Of a stretch of 64,000 nucleotides of DNA, positions 2,040 to 29,127 are shown in pieces. Made by a program: the position numbers and the translations under genes. This stretch comes from Dimorphilus gyrociliatus. Its lineage: Eukaryota; Animalia; Annelida. The first letter of the stretch is position 1. Every line of letters begins with the position of its first letter. The stretch spans positions 434,001 through 498,000 of the forward strand of contig CAJFCJ010000018.1 of the NCBI GenBank assembly GCA_904063045.1, read 5' to 3'. The notes beneath the pieces were generated by a model. It did not search any database. It worked only from the letters and a program-made list of their open reading frames with translations, and was not told the origin of the DNA.

Positions 2040-3286
2040 ATGCTTGCTTCAAATAAAAGTTGGGCACGTAATTTTTTTTCTGGACAACAAGGGCTTGAAG
2101 TTCATCCATTCTGGCACAAATATGACATTCCCGGAATAAATCCAGCCTATCACTATGGTTTAGGCACTTATATTGGTTTCGTTTGTGTCCTGGGCACTTT
2201 GGGTAATTTGTTAGTTCTCTACCTTTTTACTGTGTAAGTTTGAATAGCTTTGATTAGGTTAATTCTAAAGATTTTTATTAATTGCCTCACAGAACCAAAA
2301 GTCTTCGCTCTCCCTCAAATTTGTTTATTCTTTCGTTAGCGCTAAGCGATGCGACTTTTTCAGCTATCAACGGTTTCCCGCTTTTAACAATATCTTCCTT
2401 TTATCGAAAATGGATATTTGGGAAGTTAGCATGTGAACTTTATTCAATGATAGGAGGTATATGCGGATTTGCGTCAATAAATGCTGTTGCTTTTATTGCT
2501 TTTGATCGATTTTTCGTAATTGCTTATCCATTTGATGCAATGAAAAAAATGACGAAAAAGAGAGCAATTCTTCAAATACTATTTTTATGGGCTTACTCAA
2601 TAGCATGGGCGCTTCCGCCAATGTTTGGCTGGGGAGCTTTCATTCCAGAAGGATTTCAAACAAGTTGCTCTTTCGACTATCTAACATTAACTTTGAATAA
2701 TGTACGTTAATGTAATTTTGGTTCAAGATAGTAATTCTATATTTTTCAGATTAGCTATGTATTTGCAATGTTCACATTTGCTTTCATCTTGCCGGTTCTT
2801 GTCATAATAATCTGCTACATTAACATAGTCCGGGCCGTCTCCAGCCAAGCTAAAACTATGTCAAAAACAGCAGAAAAAATGGGAGCAAAAACAACTAAGG
2901 ATGATCATAAACAAGAAATTCGGTTAGCAAAAATAGCTGCAGGAACTTTTACATTATTTCTCCTTTCGTGGTCACCTTATGCAATTGTTACTATTGGAGG
3001 AATGGCAGGTTTTCCCTGGCTAATAACCCCTTTTTCTTGTGAATTACCTGTAATGTTTGCCAAAATGTCGGCAGTTTATAACCCTTTACTTTATGCCCTA
3101 TCTCATCCTAAATTCAGAGCAGCTCTAAACGACAAAGTACCCTGGCTAACCATTTGCTGCCCAGCCATAGAGACTGCAGCAAAGAGTAGTCGATCTGGAA
3201 TAAAATCTACAACTGCAAAGCAGTCAAACGATTCTTCAACAGCAGTTGAGATGGAAACTGTTGTAGCTTCGACTGTCACAGCTTAG
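2040..3286 (+). CDS. Rhabdomeric (Gq-coupled) opsin, 3 exons (2040-2233, 2293-2701, 2750-3286)
   Basis: 7TM protein with retinal-binding Lys in FAKMSAVYNP, the r-opsin HPK motif (LSHPKFR), E181 counterion in PEGFQTSC and DRF. Both introns are phase-consistent. Confidence 0.97.
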
Positions 3287-8595: not shown

Positions 8596-9873
8596 TTAAT
8601 ATTGAATAAAATCTCTAACTTTAAATGGATAAAGAGCCTGACTAGGAGCTACCAACCAGCATCGGGATCCTCCACGTGTAGCCAATTTAGCTGGAAAATA
8701 TTTTTCTTTTATAAAAACAGCACCATATGGCTGGTCAAATTGAACACTATTTTCGGAACCCAGGTAATTTTTTTTTGCCTCACCCAATATTCCCCCAATA
8801 TATTCATCCATTTCGTCATGTTCTTCAATGTGAATGTCTAGATGTTCCCTCTTATCAAAATGTTTAGCTAAATTAACTCTTACAACCATAGTTCTGGATG
8901 ATTTTCCTGTTGTTACCATCATAGACTTTTCATCTTTTGATTTGCCCATGCTCAAATGTATGTTGCCCATAACATAACCACCAAAATTGCCCCAAGTCAA
9001 ACTGGTATTAACTACTTTATCTGTTGTTATCATTACAACATTGTTTGCAGATCTTACTGAGACTGCATGAAAATATCTGTCATCTAAAACATGCGCAGAA
9101 ACAGACCAACCAGCTTTAGTATCATTTAATAAGATGAGCTCTTCCCCAGCTCTACCAATAATATCAAAACAAAGTGGTAATTTGCTAAGGCTGCCATAAA
9201 CCAAAAAATGAGGATCGCCTTCCGCCCCGGGCACAGATTTACACGATAAAGGCATACAAATGATATCATTTTCTTCATTAGAATCTGTAAATGAACTTTT
9301 TAACATTCTTCTGCCAGATTTTAAAGGTACATTTATTCTCTCGCTTTTTATACAGCCGCAAATTTCTAGTTGCTTACTACATTGGGCGGAGGAAATATTT
9401 ATGGTGCATCCCAAAGTCACTGTTTTCACTTGATTAATATTTAGAGATGTAACAGTATCGTCTGAAGAAGACACTTGCCATGACTGTACACTACTGCCCT
9501 CATTTTTAGACACAACCTACAATATAATACAACCTATGAATATAATTTATATGAATATAATTGAAACTAATACTGACGTCAAGTCGAAAAGCAAAATTAT
9601 TTTCAAGTGGTTTAATTGGAGGAGGTATATTTGCATTCCCGTTGTTTCTAATTTTTAAAGCAACTTTAATTTGCACTGGTTGGTCTCTTTCGACTTGCAA
9701 AATCGCCTCAAAGCCAGGCAAAGCTTCCAAACTGACAGCTTCAATATCAGTCAGAACAGTAGCTATATAACAAATTTTCATGAAATCAAAGATCTAATTT
9801 CATAAACATAAAAAAGGGTCTTACCTGAACCAAACGAAATGCAAGCTATAAAAAAGAAAACCAAACCTGTCAT
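8596..9873 (-). CDS. Secreted protein: signal peptide + Ig/CARDB-like domain + ITIH C-terminal-like domain with GDPH; 3 exons (9873-9825, 9762-9578, 9516-8596)
   Basis: Signal peptide MTGLVFFFIACISFGS, phase-consistent introns, then EGDPHFLVY..LPLCFDIIGRAGEELILLND..GWSV, which resembles the inter-alpha-trypsin inhibitor heavy chain C-terminal domain. Confidence 0.8.
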
Positions 9874-10289: not shown

Positions 10290-13200
10290 TCAGTTTTTAC
10301 AACAAATGGTCCAATCATATATTTTTTTCCATATTGTAGACTCCCGATGAAAAACTCCCTCGAATGTTGCTAAAAATACAAAACATTCATATTTTTTACA
10401 CTTCATATAAAAACAGTACCTCCAAAATTTTCATCTTGAAATTGTGCTTCTGGAATCAGTTCTTTAAGTATATCAACCGACTGGTATGATACCTAGAAAA
10501 AAACTAAAAGAAAAGTTCTTAGGAAATATATTGTATATCTTACTGTCGTGAAAAGTTTTTTGTATTTCTTTGGAAATTTTGAATTTGAAACAGACATCCA
10601 AGTATTGCCTTGATCAAAACTAAGAACAAAAGATCTTTGGTTTTTAGAAATTCCATAAATGACACCATTATCATCAATGCCTAGAAATCGATCCAAAGCT
10701 GGTATCGCTGAAAAAATATACACATTGATTTGGTAAAAAACAGATGTAATATTACCTCTCCACTTTAAATTATTTCTAAAATGACAAAAGCCGCGAAAAC
10801 TGAAAGAAAGGGTGATGTTTTTAAGTTTATTTACTAAAAAGACAGTTTATACTTCACAGAATTGCATATATATATGTTGTTATCAATTTTAAGAAATCCT
10901 CTACTAATATTTAGCATGTCGTTGCTAAATTTAGGACAATCGTTGTAAATTACTGTAAAGACGAAAGGGTAAGAAAGTATTCAGATTTCCTAATTAATAT
11001 AAAGATATACTGTTTTGCGGTAGAAAACACCCGAAGACCTTCATTTTTATGGAAAACGTTTTCGTGTAAGCAGTCTTCTCGAACTCAAATTTTATATGTC
11101 TTGATCCTTGAGGGTTCATGATAATTATATCCTGATTTCCATTAGAAACATTTACACTATGAAATTCGCCTTTCATCCAAATTATACCATCCTGACTGTA
11201 ATATATTTTTATGCCTTTTAAGGTATTTGAAACCGAAGTGTCCTTTACATAAACTGATATTTTAGTTATTCGAGTTAAGTTGCGAAAAAAAACAGTCGTA
11301 TACGGTTTTTCTTCTGCCTTTGTTGGAAGAAGTTGATAATCTAAAATGTAAATTCACTAATCGTTTAAAAATACTTCTTTAATATATATTATCTTACCGT
11401 TGAAAATATTTTCTATACTTTTACCAAATGATCCATCAATGCGACAATTATCCTCTGGTATAAATATTTCTGAGGAACAACCAGTAATTTGTTTCGAAAA
11501 AATTGTTACAGTCTTGAAACTTTTTAAGCTAGACAAAAAAATGTTTCCTTCTGCAAAACTACTATTCACTCTTGGGATCATTTGAAACGAAGTTTGTAAT
11601 AATATCGATGTGTTTCTTTTCAAGTATTTCAAATCGTACATTGAATCAAGGACGTCAAAATTGAGATTTAAGTATATATAATCGGTAAAGAATATTCTCT
11701 TATACTAAAAATATTCTAAAATTAGTATAATTTTTAATGGAAAATAATCACCTTTATTTCAATGCCATATCCAAAACTGATATAATTCACGTCTGGAGAA
11801 GAAAAATTTGTGAAGATTATATTCGAAAATTTTAAAATAGGCGGATAAAATATATGTAGAGTAATGTTGACTGCTTCAGCCTGTGAACTGTTTAAGTGTT
11901 TCAAATATACACCTAATGAGATGTTTCGTCTGTAGAAATATGCTGTTTATGAAATGTTTTTTTTTTAAACAATAAGTATATTTACGGATTAAGAAGCTCA
12001 GAAATTGAGTTGGAAGATAACTCGAGTGATAGTTTTGGATTTTCAAAGTTTGTGCGTTTAATGATCAGATGATGTTCCGTTAACTTTATAACAGAGCCAT
12101 ATTTTAAACCCAAGAGTATAGATATCTTTTGCCTATTTTCATTTAAAACGCTATCGGCGCATTGTAATTCGTAAAGTAAGAATATTTCATTATTTTCACT
12201 ATCTGTGTCTTGCTGACGACTACCAGCTCCTGAATTAGAAACTATGCCAAAATCTAGAATCAGCTTGTCGTTTTGAGAATTTTTGTTTGAAGATGTTACG
12301 TTAATATTATGTTCTCCATTATTCGAAATTGAACATCCAATGTTTTTTCCAATTTTCATGATTTTAACCCAGTTAACAGTTGCTGTTGCAGTGTCTGATA
12401 AATTAGTTTTTATATCAGTCACCAAAGAAAACGTTTCATTTTCCGGTAAAGTTATAATAACAGGGAGCAAAAAAATTTCCGAAGGATAGACTGCTTTTGA
12501 CGATTCGTTAACTGATAGAAAATCGTTACAAAGAAACCAGATTTTTTGAAAACAGAAAATGTTTTACCTTTTATTCCACCATTTGGATTACTTGTAGGAT
12601 TTAATGATTGTTGTTTCACTTCCAAGGCTAATTGGGCTAAAAAAAGCTTTTCACTATTTAGTTCAATAGCAGAACTAAACCAAAACTTGTCAGCCGAAGA
12701 GTTTTTTAATATCCTTCCTATTGCTTCCACTTTTATAACATTGTCTTTTTCAAACATAGATATATTTCTACGGCAAACGCGGCCTAATTTCAATTCCACA
12801 ATATCCATTACATTAGAATTGTTCCTGGAAAAATCTGAATATATTTTTGTTTTAACAAAGAACATAAGAAACCTCGATGAAAACTTCGGCTTAATTGCTA
12901 ATCGTTCCAAACAAGGTATATTTTTTCCAACAAATATGATGTGAGCGCTACATATATCTATTATATTAGATATATTAACAGGAGTAATAAATTTAACACT
13001 CAGTTCTTCATCACTAAAGTAAAATTTGTTTTTACACATTTTAATGAAGTACTAATAAATACCTATCAATTTCAGGATATATCTCTAAAATTGTTCTAAA
13101 GCTTTCTCCTCTTTGAATATATTTATCTTCTTCTGTTTCGTTAACAAATCCAGATCGAGTTATTTTATAATTTATTTGAGTTTTTCCCTGGTAATAAATA

Positions 13201-16200
13201 TAACTTTAAAAAAGAGAACCAAACAAAAATCGCTTACTTTGTTCATCGGCGGTGTTATATTGAAGATAGGACTTTTTTCTTCTATAAAATTATCTCCATT
13301 ATACTTTAGCGACACGTTGATGAAACTGTTGGTATCTAGACCATATTGAGAGAATACAATTTGAGATAAAATTGCTTCAAATTCAATAGTATTTTCATCA
13401 AACGTCTCGTTTAAAGAATAGTTTCCGAATCCTTAAATGGGCAATTAAATGTACTATATCCAAGATTTTAGACATAATTACCTGTGTTGCTAACAATACC
13501 CATATCTAAAGATGCCGTCTGATCGTACTGCAAATAGTTTTCCGTGTGTTTTTCATAAGAAAATTTTAATTGATTTAAACACTTAAAGTTAGAGCCAACT
13601 CTAAGTACTCGAACGTTACAAATGGAGAGAGTACTGCTTGCAATTAGCGTCAAAAACAAATGTGAAGAAGATGATGTTGGTATCTTCATAGAAAACTTGT
13701 ATGGTATTGATGAGAGTCTTCGCAAAGTATGAATTTTTTCATCAAAAAAGATTTTAGGTTTTTCGTCTAAAATATGTGGGTTAAGAAGTGTTGCAATAAA
13801 AGGAAGTTTAATAGTCCATGAATTTTCCCACATGTAATTAATTTTTATATCGATGTCAAAGCTAGAACCTTCCATTATATTTGAATAATTTTGTAATTTT
13901 ACAGTGAAGGCAAGTAGAACCTTGTTTTCTTTTTTTGTATTTTTCGGAAAATCGTTATATTTTAAGTTACAAATAGAACCAAAAGTAGCTTTAAGATTGT
14001 CATACTCGTCATTGTTCTGAGAACTAAAAAATATTGCTTTCATTGATAACTCCTTTGCAGACACACAGTGAATGTTTTCACCCACAAAGAAAACTTCAAA
14101 GGAGCAAATTTTCAAAATTGGTATTGTTGAAATTTGAGGAGAACTCAAAATAATTTCCATAGGATAATTTATAGAAAATTCTTGTGTTTCAATATCAATT
14201 TGTATACTTTTTGTTTCTTCCCTAGCAATTGTGTTATTTTTTGTTGAGAAGTACGTTTTAAAATTTGGTGTTGTGTTATTCTGATAAGGAAAAAGTACAA
14301 TAAACAATTTATTTTTTACTTATTACTTACATTGTTGTATCTTGTTATATTGTCGGAGAGAAAAACTTCAGACTTTCCAACCCAGAGTTTATTATTTGCA
14401 AATCGGAAACCTAAAGTTAGATCAATCTGCGTACCGGAAAGAGCCAAGGAATGATTTAGTACTTGAGTTGTCAAAAGAAATTTCATTTTGTTACTCTCGG
14501 GAAACTGATCGACTTCATAATGTCCTGTGTGGAGGATGTTACCCAATTTCCAAACCGCTTTGTCGTGATATTTCCCATTGTATCTTGATGAATACTCAAT
14601 CGGACAGTTATTATGTTGATGGCAAGTAACACATGGTAGGTTTTTACCACTAAAAACCATTTTTAGAGAACATATTTTTAACCATTCTTGACTTTGATTA
14701 AAAGGTAAAATAACTTCCAATTCATAGAATGACAAAGAATTTTTAGGATATTCAACAACCATTTCATGTAATATTGAGTCGCCTATAAAGACATTTTGAG
14801 GAGTTAAAAGTTCCAATGATACTTTCGGAGTTAAAACCTGAAGGAATTGAGAAATTAAAAATATTCAAATGTATATTTTATACATTACAGTGCTATATTT
14901 TGTTTTGTTTTTAGCTGTAAATAAACGTTCCCCTGTCCAAATATTACTTCCTCCTACATCAACAGCAGCACCTACCCAATAATTTTTTCCAATAAAATTG
15001 TTATTTTCTTGAAGGTGAACAACTATTTCTAAAGTTAACCTATTTTTTATAATCTCATTATCATCTTCTCTTGCACCTTTATTTATAATTTCTCCAAGAT
15101 TCAATCTCGCTTTTTCGTTTGTTATCTTTGTTTTACTTTTATATTGTTCAATATTTAGGTGATCCGTTTTTAAACATTCATAGTTTTCTCCTTTTGAAAC
15201 AACTCTTATATCACATACTGACAAGATATCGGTATGGTTCATTGGTGCAAAAACATCAAGAACAACAGTAGTTACCGCATACGGAATATAAATATCTAAA
15301 ACATATTTCGCCGAAGTTCCAATTTCCAAAAACTCCGGACCCGTAAAATTAAAGGTTGGCAAAATACTCGGAATCTAAAAAACTAAATATTAGAAGAATC
15401 ATTTCAAAACATTCTGCTTACGTGTGTATCCAAAACAGCTGTAAAAGCTGCCTGTCCGACCCAAACTTCTGTCTCGAAATTATATTCAGCTCCAGCGCTT
15501 ATCCAATAAGTTGACCCATTTATAATTGAATTTGGTTTATTTAGAAGAAAAACATCCCACTCTATTACTATCATATTATCTGAAGCTGCTCCACCGCCCG
15601 TACAACTTACATTTCCAAAGTTCAGTATTGCTCTATCGTATTCATCTGTACCATCTTTAGATTCCATGATAGGTTTAAAATTTGAAGGAATGTTGAACTG
15701 TGGATCAACAATCAATTTATTTCCAATTGTTTTCACTTTCACATCACATAATTTCGCGATTGTCGTATCATTATCTGGAGTAAAAAGTTCAACCAGCAAG
15801 TCCGTTGTATAAACTGGAAAATGTATTGCTAACTGAAAAGTAATTTTTGATCCCGGGCGCAGTTCCGTGACATTTTCATATTTTCCGTACTTAATCAAAT
15901 GTAATGTTATATTATCTGGATTGATCGGTGACGTAGGAACGCTCTGAAAAAAGAACAATGCCAATGTATTGATCTATGCAAATCAACAATAAAAAACGAT
16001 ATGTTTTTTCATTATTTTTTACAGATAAGTCATTTTAACAGAGAAATAAGCATTGAGCGAAAATTGACATTCGCCTGTATATTCAATTCCTTTTGTGAAA
16101 AGTTGTAAAGGCTTTTTTCATTTAAATTCTTACCCTCTTTGTCCTTGAATGAAGCGACGGAAGCATATTGTTTATCGGTACATTAAAAGATTCACTTTCG

Positions 16201-16918
16201 TACGAACTGTCTATGAAAAGAGAATTTTTGAGATTCAATTTCTTTTTCTTATCTTCTTCTACAATATTCAAAGTCACAACAGCAGTATCGAAATTATCCC
16301 ATTCATTGGCGTTAGAGGCTTTGACTTCTAAATGAAACATTTGACCAATAGGTAAAATTATATCTTTTTTTAAAAAGATAATTCCCGTTTGCTTTTCTAT
16401 ATCAAAAACATTTTTTTTGTCATTCGTTACCAAATAATAGTCAACATTTGCACATGTACATGGAGTTTGATTGTCTTTACAAATATATTTATCGTTGTCT
16501 TCTGCAAATACTTGAAACACCTCTCTTTTGATAAAATTTCCTTTAGATGCCACGTTAACTTTATAGGATTTTTGAGAAAATTTGGGAGAAAACTTGTTAA
16601 CTGAGGGGAAAACAATTTTTCGATTCTCGTTAAAAAATGAAAAATTTTTTACCATAGGTTTCACAGTTTGTTCCAATGAAACAGTTGTTACAAACACACT
16701 GATTATCTTGGCAAATGCCATTCAAACATCTGAGATTAGGACATTATATATTAACAGAAAATTATTAATATTTTAAATGTAAAAGTGTTTTTTACCGGGC
16801 TACATCACACAGTCCAGAAATTGCTGAAAGGAATATTTATAATTTAACTAGCTTGTGAAAAAATGAAAAAACCTGTAATAAAGGTAAGTAGTAAGAGACA
16901 TATTAGTCTTGTTGCCAT
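10290..16918 (-). CDS. Large secreted multidomain protein: signal peptide, EGF-like, cadherin domain, furin site, ~7 tandem unnamed repeats, F5/8 type C (discoidin), Asp-box C-terminus
   Basis: MATRLICLLLLTFIT signal; CDVARCLNGICQDNQCVCNNCFIGTNC (EGF); cadherin motifs PKFSQKSY..AEDND..FDIEKQTGIIFL; RTKR; repeats with C-x8-G-x-N-x2-C; YYSQDGIIW..KVFGC (discoidin); SFDQGNTW; ends WKKIYDWTICCKN* at 10290. Most joins checked for phase, some internal ones not. Confidence 0.8.
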
Positions 16919-17080: not shown

Positions 17081-17715
17081 TTAAGGATTCTTCCATGGTA
17101 GTACTTTCTGTGTCTTCTCGCTGGAGCTTCTATAACGAAAGACGTTTTCCGTAGATGGGGTAGGTCTTCTACCAAATCTGTCAATACCATTACTTTCTCT
17201 TAAAGTAAAACGACTGTTTAAATTTCCGGGTGAGAAATATCGTACACCATATCCGCAAAAATGAAAATCTGCTTTGTTTTCCATTAGTTCAGGTAACCTT
17301 ATTTCGAATCGTTCGGGACATCTTTCTAAAAATTCTGACCAATTTTCCTTTGTTTGATTTATTTCTCGGTTTGAAGTATAAAAGCTTTTAAATGGATTCT
17401 AAAAGGGGTGAAAGTGTTCCAATATAAATTGAATTACATTTCTTTAATGTACCTTACCTCATTCTGTCTGTCTAAGATGTCATATGGTTTTCTTTGTTCT
17501 TTGCCTGGAAGAACAAATTTTGTTGAAGTTTGGCAATGTTCATCCGACAGTTTATTCATATGTGTATCTCTATCAACATTTCTAAACGAAGGCAAGGTAG
17601 GGTAAAAAATACCCTTCTTTATTGCTGTTAACTTTACTCTTGAAGAACATGGATACTTGTATGCATATAAAGGAATATTTAGAGGTACATTATGATTTCT
17701 CTCTCCGAGAGACAT
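17081..17715 (-). CDS. TEPP: TEPP / sperm microtubule inner protein 8 homolog, 2 coding exons
   Basis: FYPTLPSFRNVDRDTHMNKLSDEHCQTST, ENWSEF, FCGYGVRYF and IDRFGRRP..PWK line up with the TEPP motifs I recall (YHPALPTLRHMDRDT..LPDEHCQSTT, EDWSHF, SGYAVRYL, LDRYGQKP). Phase-0 intron at about 17402-17457. RFX-like half site TTAGCAAC at 17749-17756. Confidence 0.8.
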
Positions 17716-17846
17716 TGCAAATTTCTAATAGTGTAGTCAAACTGAATCTTAGCAACGAGACTGGCACGTATTCGAATATTGCTTTTGATATATGATATAC
17801 TTTTATTTGTCTACCTTTTTTCTACTTCTAGCATGCAAAAATGAAT

Positions 17847-19343: not shown

Positions 19344-21281
19344 TCAATAAGCATCTGGACCTCCACTCTTCCTAAAATCACTTACAGAATGTAGACATAT
19401 ATTTGTAGCATCCCATAAGTTCGTTGTCGAACAGTTACTTTTTATAGCTTGACATACTGCAACCCCTAGTTCAGGACTTTGTTCGACCATTTTATGACCT
19501 CGCTTTTTTAATGCTTGAATTAATGATTTAGGTAGTGCACTCTCATATAGAACCCTATTAGGCATTAACTGATGATGAAATCTTGCAATATTAACTGCAT
19601 CATCTACATCTTTTTGAAGCCATAACGCAAATGCCGAAACTGTTAAGACAGCTGGGGGAATTTTCGTTCCTCCAGAAGCTCCCACAACGAATTTCACATT
19701 TCCTGAAAAATCTGTAAAAATTGATCCGCATGTGCTTGACTGAGGCCTTTTTCCTGGTCTTATTTGATTAGCAGGAGAATTTAAGGCTCCCCAAAAATTC
19801 TCCTTTGTTGAAATACGGCTAAAGTCATCCATTTGATTGTTAAATATAATACCTGTTCTTTCTCCCACTTTTCTTGAGCCAAACGATAAATTTATGGTAG
19901 AAGTGACACTTACTGCATCTCCGTTTGGGGATATTACTGCAACATGAGTTGTGCCATGTGTTTCGGAAATTTCCCCCGCTGGTTCGTAATAAGGAACGTC
20001 GTGTGTCCTATTCATGTCTATTTTCGAAAGTATTCTTTTTATCGTTGACTCTGATAACATGTCTTCAACAGTGTGATTCATGAAACGATTGAAAGAGGGA
20101 TCTCCTAAAAAACTCTTTGCAGCAAATCCGAATTTAAAAATTTCTATTAGACTGTGATATAAATCGACTGATTTTTCGAATTCGCTTATGTTTTGTGGAC
20201 TCAAGTTTAAATGGTCTAATAAATTAAGCATTAGTTGATACGCAGGACCGGATGATGGCGGTGGAGGAGAGTATACTGTAATATTTAGGCTTGATAGATT
20301 TGATTTAACAGGTCTAGCGAAATAAGCTTCAAACTGGTTAAGATCTTCTTTTTTTATTATACTTCCATGATCTTGCAAATCGAGTAATATATCTTCAGTT
20401 AGAGAACCGTTGTAGAATGCTTTAGCACCTTCTTTTGAAATTTTTTTAAGACTTTCGGCGAGATTTTCTCTTTTCAGAATTTCTCCCTCTTTATATATTG
20501 ACCCATCATGTTTCAAAAAGGTTTTCGATAGACTAGGGCTAGATTTTAGCATATCAAAATTTTTCTTGAAAGCCTCTGCTAAAGCGTGCTGGACAGGAAA
20601 TCCTTCCGCTAATTTTATGATAGGTTCAAATAAGTCACTCCAAGGAAGTTTGCCAAATTTTGACCAGGCTTTATGTAAACCTATAAAGAGATAAACTAGC
20701 TATTGCTCATTTTAAAGCGATGCAAACCTGCAATCTCTCCGGGCACAGCAATGGCCCTACCTCCATACATGGATTCATTCGATGGTCTTTCGAATAGTTC
20801 TTCAGATGCTGCTAAAGGGGCTTTTTCTCTTGCAATCTCTGAAACCACCTCATGCTCTCCATAAATTAACATTATATGTCCCCCACCTAAACCTGACGAC
20901 ATAGGTGAAACAACTCCTAGACATAATAGTGTAATAATTGCAGCATCAACCGCACTCCCACCCTTTTTTGCCATTATGTTTGTCCCAAGTGAAGAGCAAT
21001 GCTGCTCATCTGAAGCTACAGTTCCAAATTTACCATAAGTCGACTTTGAGGTACCTTGATATATTACTGGTGCGTAATTAAATGTTTGTGAAAAAGATAA
21101 AACAATAAGTAGAGGCAAGCCAACTCCAATGGCAGCTCCGATCAAAACTGTTAATAAACCACCACAAATACGAAGTTTACTGCAACAGAAATTATGTTGA
21201 TTTTTAATCTGAAATTATAATTTTCAACCTTTTTTTGTGTGTAGAATTTTCCTGGTTTAACTTCGTGTACTCACTCTTCAT
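19344..21281 (-). CDS. GGT: Gamma-glutamyltranspeptidase (type II membrane protein)
   Basis: N-terminal TM anchor, GGSAVDAAI..GLGGG, catalytic Thr in HGTTHVAV, NNQMDDFS, PGKRPQSS and VGASGGTKI. Confidence 0.95.
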
Positions 21282-27470: not shown

Positions 27471-29127
27471 ATGGCTGCTTCGAACTGGAAATTGGTGCTG
27501 CCTGAAACTGTTGCTCAGTGCATACACGATGACACAGACAAGGTAAAGAATACAATACACACGAAAAACTGAGTACTATACGATCGCTTATTTTTACAGG
27601 TGCTCATCGTAGACAGTCGTTCGTTTCTAGAATATAACACTTGTCACATTGGGAATGCGATAAACGTTTGCTGTTCTAAACTAGTAAAGCGAAGATTGCA
27701 AAAAGATAAGGTAGATTTGCAATGTAATTCTTTAACATAAGCCATTCTAATTTAATGAATAGATTTCAATTGTGGAGCTGTTACACTGTTCAACAAATTG
27801 CGAAACGAATACCGATCGTTTTATCATCGTTTACGACCAATGCACGTCTGATCCAACTGCACTGCCCGTCGATTGTTTTGCATTTGTGCTGGTTTCAAAA
27901 TTAAACACTCTATTCAGAAAAGTTGCATTCTTGAAAGGAGGTTTCCTTGATTTTAAGGCATCTTATCCTTCACTTTGTGAAAGCAAAAGTTGTAATGTAT
28001 CTGGACTGGAAACGAAACCAACGTTAACGAGCATGTCACAACCTTGCATGCCTGTTTCATCTCAGGGACCTACCAAGATATTACCATTCCTCTATCTCGG
28101 TTCGCAAAACGATGCTTTATCTAAAAAGCTATTTGATCAACAGAAAATCACCCACGTTCTAAATGTTTCTACACAATGTCCACAGCCTGAACATGTCATG
28201 GATGCTTATTTCTTTCGAATTGCCATCAACGATAATTATACTAGTAAACTTCTGCCTCATCTAGACAAGGCTTTCTCATTTATAAACAAAGTTAAAGAAG
28301 CAAACGGGAAAGTTCTTGTTCATTGCATGGCAGGGATTTCCCGATCTCCTGCCCTAGCTATTGCATATATAATGAAATATCTGAATATGTCATCAGATGA
28401 TGCTTACAAATTCGTTAAAGAAAAACGGCCTACGATATCTCCAAACTTTAACTTCCTTGGCCAGTTAACTGAATATGAAAAATTTTTAAAGAACGATGGT
28501 CCACCCATACCTCCAAAACTCCTACCGATACAACATCAACCTTCAGCTACACTTCACAGTCCTACCACCGCTTTTTCCCTACTCAGCTTCTCCGAGGCTG
28601 AAGTTCCCATGCCGAAACACGCACTCCCGGCATCATCATTAAGAAATATTCAATTTACGGCCTGCTCCAAACTTCCTTCAAAAGCCAATGTTAGAAGACC
28701 TTTAAGTTTGAATGTGGAGACGGAATCTTTATCATTTAGAGGTTCTCAAGCTTCACCATGTCCCAAACCAGCAGTTAAAAGACCTCTTAGCTTAGGTGTT
28801 GATCCACCTTCACTTTCGTCAAGTAAGCGCCCAACGGTCAGACCGTGCAGCATTGGACTGACAGGAACACCTTTGACACCTCAGAAAGAGGAATCACCAC
28901 CTGCAAATTTTACTTCAGAAATAAGTGAGAGACGTTGTCGAAGTTTCGACAACCTTTTTGCAGATAATGAAGACAATGATGAAATTACAGGAGGTTGTTC
29001 ATTCAGACGGAAACATCCAATGTACAGTAGTATAGGGGGAGGAAGTGTACAGAGTAACAGCTCACCTATTTCATCAGCAGGAAGTTCATCATTACATGGA
29101 AGTAGAGAGTTAATTTCTGTTACGTAA
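27471..29127 (+). CDS. Dual-specificity MAPK phosphatase (DUSP8/16-like)
   Basis: Rhodanese domain VLIVDSRSFLEYNTCHIGNAINVCCSKLVKRRLQKDK, catalytic VHCMAGISRS, TISPNFNFLGQL. Confidence 0.93.

Follow-up and report, generated by a model that had tools for sequence, protein, structure and literature searches.

Tandem repeats of an uncharacterized animal gene family are predicted to be CnaA-like domains remotely related to stalk domains of bacterial fibrillar adhesins

Introduction

CnaA-like stalk domains, such as the middle domains of pilins and the DUF11/CLIPPER domains of fibrillar adhesins, have been regarded as a speciality of bacteria and archaea. In a 2025 survey of isopeptide domains, DUF11 was renamed CLIPPER, the pilin family PF16569 was listed as CnaA-like with a Lys-Asp-Asn triad, and eukaryotic matches were judged to be false positives or contamination (PMC12617251). 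Here, clear relatives of these domains are described in an intron-containing animal gene. The gene is located in a stretch of 64,000 nucleotides (nt) from the annelid Dimorphilus gyrociliatus (assembly GCA_904063045.1, contig CAJFCJ010000018.1, positions 434,001 to 498,000 of the forward strand), referred to below as the window and numbered from its first letter. A first-pass annotation of the window, made from the sequence alone, had described seven tandem copies of an extracellular repeat that it could not assign to a named domain, and had suggested that the large secreted protein carrying them might be a matrix, cuticle or adhesive component. We report that the family to which this gene belongs is a eukaryotic, isopeptide-free and putatively disulfide-bearing branch of a known domain class, set in a new architecture.

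Seven tandem repeats on the minus strand

The gene was found to run on the minus strand from about 16.9 kb to 10290 and to encode, in order, an EGF-like module, a cadherin domain, seven repeats (R1 to R7), an eighth, DUF11-like domain, an F5/8C discoidin domain and an Asp-box tail ending in W..CC. All seven motif strings given by the first-pass annotation were located on this strand, where the repeats, of 162-190 amino acids (aa) each, occupy 11988-15943 (carried by long open frames in the interval 11985-15973). Their G-x-N cores start at 15730, 15197, 14651, 14085, 13599, 12931 and 12353, and are thus 486-668 nt apart, in agreement with the periodicity of about 480-670 nt first proposed. When a profile built from six repeats was scored on the seventh, each omitted repeat reached 42-69 bits (E 1e-12 to 4e-21); shuffled controls (200 shuffles per repeat) stayed at or below 9.4 bits. 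The count of seven copies was thereby upheld. The first-pass consensus, C-x8-G-x-N-x2-C, had to be corrected to C-x7-G-x-N-x2-C, and two of the repeats each lack one Cys: R1 has the first Cys, together with a Cys at column 97, and is without the second, and R7 has only the second. Both patterns were the same in orthologues. Across 98 repeats from 14 species, the Cys pair was found in 79-80%, with both Cys present in 64 of the 70 R2-R6 units, and the follow-on motif D-x-A-x3-(L)G-x-V-x-N-x-G and late W, also described at first pass, were retained.

All repeat exons have open frames and are bounded by canonical GT-AG sites whose phases match. The observation that several repeats sit on their own exon proved correct for R1, R2 and R3; R4 and the first half of R5 lie on one exon, and a short intron interrupts each of R5 and R6. 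In the 98-repeat alignment and the leave-one-out test, the R5 and R6 rows of the window were joined exon halves with the codon-spanning residue included (2 of the 98 and 2 of the seven rows, respectively), and profiles derived from the alignment carry the same two rows. A tree of the 98 repeats was made with single-exon pieces, and searches were made exon by exon rather than with an assembled spliced protein; no conclusion depends on the joined rows. Genome-wide, the repeat was confined to this gene (78-Mb assembly, 349 contigs).

Relationship to bacterial adhesin domains

A profile of six window repeats was searched against 1.84 billion representatives, returning 381 proteins at E ≤ 0.001 and 34 at E ≤ 1e-30. 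As well as the animal proteins described below, the search found giant bacterial proteins of 2,800-6,300 aa (E 1e-20 to 1e-8), rich in DUF11 and named as isopeptide-forming fimbrial proteins. Two domain types alternate in these giants. One is canonical DUF11, which matches TIGR04226 and TIGR01451 and has conserved Lys, Asp and Asn residues; the other, here called the 'alternate' type, is without the Lys and is the type matched by the animal profile. Where Pfam reports positions, the 'alternate' domain coincides with weak matches to PF16569 (GramPos_pilinBB). A protein of 3442 aa from the transcriptome of the protist Fabomonas tropica likewise showed 'alternate' and DUF11 domains in the complete arrangement known from bacteria; it could be either bacterial contamination of the transcriptome or a second eukaryotic occurrence.

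In the reverse direction, a profile of the bacterial 'alternate' domain matched full-length animal proteins at about 16-145 bits. Alignment of the 98 animal repeats to 22 bacterial 'alternate' domains with hhalign gave a probability of 99.2% (E 7.5e-20, 127 columns), with the G-x-N turn, the D...G-x-V-x-N motif and the next strand in register. The animal profile reached only 2.3% against canonical DUF11, used as a negative control, and 'alternate' against canonical gave 87.6%. By language-model features, the nearest ESM Atlas clusters were DUF11 clusters (score 0.94), an independent pointer in the same direction. As judged by these profile comparisons, the animal repeat was shown to be a remote homologue of the non-isopeptide 'alternate' stalk domain of bacterial DUF11/CLIPPER fibrillar adhesins.

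A beta-sandwich had been proposed for the repeats at first pass, and this was borne out by an AlphaFold2 model of R2 built from a 28-row alignment, which gave an all-beta sandwich with a predicted local distance difference test score (pLDDT) of 90.9 and a predicted template modelling score of 0.85. This run superseded an earlier one with six rows, which had reached a pLDDT of 76 and generic sandwich matches. By structural modelling, the fold of the repeat was shown to be a CnaA-like Ig-type beta-sandwich, and the predicted structure is a line of evidence separate from the hhalign comparison. The isopeptide bond of the class appears to be missing, as no first-strand Lys or last-strand Asn of the Lys-Asp-Asn triad was conserved across the 98 repeats. 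None of the window repeats matched PF16569 at E ≤ 1, and its gathering score was not reached; likewise, the seven repeats gave no match to PF01345 (DUF11/CLIPPER) in Pfam or to TIGR01451.

A proposed stalk function

Our preferred reading, to which we assign a probability of about 0.7, is that the array forms the central rod of a secreted protein, and that its CnaA-like domains, homologous to the bacterial 'alternate' stalk domain, act as a stiff stalk in adhesion. Each domain would be pinned by a bond between the conserved Cys residues where bacterial relatives use a Lys-Asn isopeptide, and the eight domains together may make up a rigid stalk with a length of tens of nanometres. By analogy with the stalk of bacterial fibrillar adhesins (PMC12617251), it would keep the N-terminal EGF/cadherin end apart from the C-terminal discoidin end (which would bind sugar, lipid or collagen) and so serve adhesion in the matrix or at the cell surface.

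Several points weigh against this reading. A search of all repeat exons against Pfam (2025 copy) gave no model at E ≤ 1, only chance sub-threshold matches to PBECR1 and DUF7468, and a search of NCBIfam with R2 and one orthologue gave no match. The bacterial 'alternate' alignment was itself selected with the animal profile, which makes the hhalign comparison partly circular. The internal disulfide is read from co-conservation of the Cys residues, and the stalk and adhesion role is drawn by analogy. Furthermore, the splice phase of the candidate first exon (a signal-peptide-like open reading frame, ORF; Table 1) into the next exon does not reconcile.

The same database results could be taken to favour the view of the first-pass annotation that this is a lineage-restricted repeat of a new kind, unrelated to described domains. 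Neither Pfam nor NCBIfam recognised it, a 28-row profile found one chance match (E 0.38) among the sequences of the PDB, and a word-based protein search with the R4-R5a exon found none, as expected given the length window of that search. A repeat of a new kind is nevertheless contradicted by the hhalign alignment to the bacterial 'alternate' domain and by the CnaA-like fold, and we consider it very improbable. What stood of the first-pass statement is that sequence matches in Pfam, NCBIfam and the PDB are missing; that the repeat is unassignable did not stand, given its remote homology to the bacterial DUF11/CLIPPER adhesin stalk domain.

The main competing explanation accepts the same domain identity and holds that the repeats are binding modules, comparable to cohesins, MSCRAMM adhesins or lectin-like sandwiches, rather than a passive stalk. 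The closest sequence relatives are, however, stalk units of bacterial adhesins, and dedicated binding domains are already present at both ends of the protein. In addition, the conserved columns of the repeat correspond to core and turn residues (G, N, P, W and Cys) and not to a surface patch. Binding modules were therefore regarded as an unlikely alternative, though one carrying more weight than any other considered here.

Orthologues in other animals

The best-scoring full-length relatives of the window repeats were proteins of about 1,450-1,900 aa, each matched over seven stretches. Orthologues, mostly 1600-2000 aa long, were found in at least eight phyla (molluscs, annelids, nemerteans, brachiopods, flatworms, arthropods, echinoderms and hemichordates), with species including Ptychodera, Glandiceps, Strongylocentrotus, Antedon, Anneissia, Amphiura, Lingula, Owenia, Lineus and Macrostomum as well as several molluscs, a shrimp and ticks. 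All names looked up for these relatives were "uncharacterized", "hypothetical" or "F5/8 type C domain-containing", and a search of one literature library by orthologue accessions and locus names found no paper mentioning them. Seven contiguous repeats were present in 24 of the 26 full-length members checked, and six in two more diverged ones. In the members examined, an F5/8C domain follows about 170 aa after R7; the orthologue tails all contain an Asp-box, and most end in W..CC. A hydropathy scan identified an N-terminal signal-like segment in several orthologues and a membrane helix in almost none. The suggestion of a long rod in a large secreted protein found partial support in the contiguous seven-domain array and in the signal-like starts of orthologues, the window gene's own first exon being uncertain.

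In the tree, repeats grouped by their position in the array, with eight label changes against a minimum of six and at least 58 in shuffled controls, and with support of 97-100 for the R1, R2 and R7 clades. This position-wise clustering indicates that the seven-repeat array was already fixed when these phyla split. Among full-length relatives, the molluscan ones were closest to the window gene, and a word-based search with the Ptychodera orthologue retrieved only four close deuterostome relatives. By sequence comparison, the window gene was shown to be the orthologue within an unnamed family whose members occur in cnidarians, spiralians, arthropods, echinoderms and hemichordates. No vertebrate, insect or nematode protein was among the relatives whose names were looked up, no search having been aimed at those groups; if real, this absence would explain why the family has stayed unstudied.

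The eighth domain and a cnidarian relative

The region of about 170 aa that follows R7 was considered as a cryptic eighth copy of the repeat, and this was rejected, as hhalign gave 1.5% to the seven repeats. Against canonical bacterial DUF11, the same region reached 84% (E 7e-6), and the corresponding exons of the window matched a profile of the orthologue post-R7 region in order, suggesting that the eighth domain may be canonical DUF11-like. A shorter relative in Nematostella vectensis (XP_032234226.1) contains between residues 97 and 957 an EGF, a cadherin, a DUF11-like, a repeat, a DUF11, a repeat and a DUF11-like domain (the last five at 263-347, 379-530, 559-642, 674-825 and 845-957), the middle DUF11 being recognised by Pfam at E 1.2e-4.

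These neighbours bear on a further possibility, that the repeats are strongly diverged animal cadherin, Ig or FN3 domains whose bacterial similarity arose by convergence. A cadherin domain lies directly upstream of the repeats, and integrin, complement MG and transglutaminase sandwiches also appear in the fold lists. Against this, only the upstream exon matched PF00028 and none of the repeats did, their unit of about 160 aa being 1.5 times the length of a cadherin repeat (about 110 aa). Among the proteins checked, moreover, the repeat profile found the seven-repeat family and bacterial DUF11-type proteins, and no cadherin, Ig or FN3 protein. The G-x-N, D...FG-x-V-x-N and D-x-I-v-v-E motifs align with those of the bacterial domain, and a canonical DUF11-like domain adjoins the animal repeats, with both types alternating in Nematostella. 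Diverged cadherin, Ig or FN3 domains were accordingly considered improbable.

As to the origin of the array, we lean slightly towards a scenario in which the rod of a vertically conserved animal family derives from a bacterial two-domain stalk module (DUF11/CLIPPER-like plus 'alternate'). The alternation would have been kept in the cnidarian protein, and bilaterians would have settled on a seven-plus-one array in which a disulfide stands in for the isopeptide bond, following inheritance or transfer before the split of cnidarians and bilaterians. The family would then be the first accepted eukaryotic lineage of these domains.

Gene structure and genomic setting

The remaining exons of the gene were placed by frames, splice phases and profile matches (Table 1), and the encoded protein is probably about 1,600-1,700 aa long. 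By tblastn, the gene was collinear with its orthologues from the N-terminal region through the discoidin domain. In orthologues, the EGF-like module matches EGF_Teneurin, and F5/8C scores 38-60 bits at the same position. The signal-peptide-like ORF upstream of the EGF-like exon is probably the start of the gene. An ATG-initiated ORF beginning MAFAK (16125-16721, 199 aa) was rejected as the gene start, as the overlapping EGF-like frame (16654-16743) is conserved in orthologues. The overlap of these two frames forms an annotation trap, in which an ORF caller would pick MAFAK as the start.

Table 1. Positions of the exons and domains assigned to the repeat gene, numbered along the window
Feature	Position	Strand	Remarks
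Candidate signal-peptide ORF (MATRLICLLLLTFITGFFIFSQA)	16850-16918	-	Read from frames; orthologues start with signal-peptide-like segments; uncertain
EGF-like six-Cys module, C-x4-C-x4-C-x-C-x2-C-x5-C	16654-16728	-	Phase-1 donor after ...ETY; tblastn of Patella orthologue residues 10-43
Cadherin-like exon	16134-16598	-	PF00028 E 7.8e-6, 26.6 bits, just below cut-off of 28.8; collinear with orthologue cadherin region
Repeat R1	15422-15943	-	Single exon; first Cys only; 45-48% identical to mollusc R1
Repeat R2	14889-15374	-	Single exon; unit modelled by AlphaFold2
Repeat R3	14331-14837	-	Single exon
Repeat R4	13774-14280	-	Same exon as R5a, no intron between
Repeat R5, first part (R5a)	13483-13773	-	Exon ends in phase 1
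Repeat R5, second part (R5b)	13238-13429	-	Splice phases fit
Repeat R6, first part	13065-13187	-	Phase-2 donor, intron of about 50 nt
Repeat R6, second part	12569-13012	-	Frames and splice sites
Repeat R7	11988-12509	-	First Cys absent
Eighth domain, exon 1	11752-11928	-	28.4 bits to orthologue post-R7 profile; canonical DUF11-like, distinct from the seven
Eighth domain, exon 2, into discoidin start	11399-11704	-	24.6 bits to post-R7 profile
F5/8 type C (discoidin) exon	11012-11341	-	PF00754 E 3.1e-5, 24.5 bits, below cut-off of 28.2
Asp-box exon, SFDQGNTW at 10598-10621	10544-10708	-	S-x-D-x-G-x-T-W also in orthologue tails
Penultimate exon (...QDENFG)	10421-10492	-	Frames and splice phases
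Last exon, ends ...WKKIYDWTICCKN (...DWTICCKN), then stop	10290-10367	-	Conserved W..CC terminus

That the locus is a decaying gene, an assembly artefact or contamination was given the least credence of all the explanations weighed. The start of the gene was not cleanly modelled, and the cadherin and discoidin matches fall just below their Pfam cut-offs, as such an explanation would have it. On the other hand, the intact repeat exons with their splice sites and phases, the collinearity with orthologues and the conservation of the tail, with its Asp-box and W..CC end, all speak against it, as do the animal genes in the neighbourhood (opsin, gamma-glutamyltranspeptidase (GGT), SPMIP8 and dual-specificity phosphatase (DUSP)). 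Bacterial DNA is ruled out because the gene has introns.

The window is AT-rich (about 30-36% guanine plus cytosine) and dense in intron-containing animal genes. Immediately upstream of the repeat gene, and on its strand, lies an exon of SPMIP8 (sperm microtubule inner protein 8; 17437-17724, minus strand, PF22574 E 2.8e-13), which belongs to a separate gene. Downstream, an ITIH-like ORF (8596-9873, minus strand), which has a GDPH motif and a weak ITI_HC_C match (E 0.014), was rejected as part of the repeat gene; it represents a separate gene, because the stop of the repeat gene at 10290 precedes it. By eye, two ORFs at 2282-3286 (plus strand) resemble a rhodopsin-type opsin, with the Lys in a FAKMSAVYNPLLY helix-7 motif, and a GGT-like gene (19344-21145, minus strand) and a DUSP-like ORF (27772-29127, plus strand) were recognised in the same way. 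The introns of about 50-60 nt, together with the GGT-like and DUSP-like neighbours, point to a very compact animal genome.

Comparison with known systems

With these results, a conserved animal family of about 1,800 aa, so far annotated only as uncharacterized, gains a name and a fold, and a new Pfam or InterPro entry would be justified. The family is a natural example of one fold in which an isopeptide seems to have given way to a disulfide, and it raises the testable question of whether these domains were transferred anciently between bacteria and the stem lineage of animals.

Among animal proteins, the same architecture as that of the window protein is found in orthologues from Ptychodera flava (XP_070558199.1), Lingula anatina (XP_013418610.1), Strongylocentrotus purpuratus (XP_030828382.1), Patella vulgata (XP_055958297.1) and Sinanodonta woodiana (KAL3853681.1). 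The window protein is more diverged than these, R3-R6 being 22-30% identical to their counterparts, compared with the higher identity of R1 to mollusc R1 (Table 1).

The middle domains of the pilins LrpA (8WB8), EbpB (9LJ6), CppA (5XCB), BcpA (3KPT) and RrgB (2X9W), which belong to PF16569, are likewise CnaA-like and are 9-15% identical to the animal repeats. Middle domains of Gram-positive sortase pilins carry the Lys-Asp-Asn isopeptide triad (PMC12617251, Table 1), whereas the animal repeats do not. The triad of DUF11/CLIPPER (PF01345, PDB 9IFR) is also absent from the seven animal repeats, which reached the low hhalign probability given above against the canonical domain.

The bacterial 'alternate' domain, for example that of the Verrucomicrobiales protein MCF6313106.1, is similar in length to the animal repeat and shares with it the G-x-N turn, the D...(F/L)G-x-V-x-N-x-(G/d) motif and D/N-x-I-x-v-E. 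Neither the 'alternate' domain nor the animal repeat has a conserved N-terminal Lys, and each occurs as tandem copies within long secreted proteins. In bacteria, the copies are interleaved one-to-one with isopeptide-type DUF11 and lack a Cys pair, whereas the bilaterian repeats stand seven in a row and have a conserved Cys pair. The Nematostella protein, for its part, alternates DUF11-like and repeat domains, as bacterial giant adhesins do.

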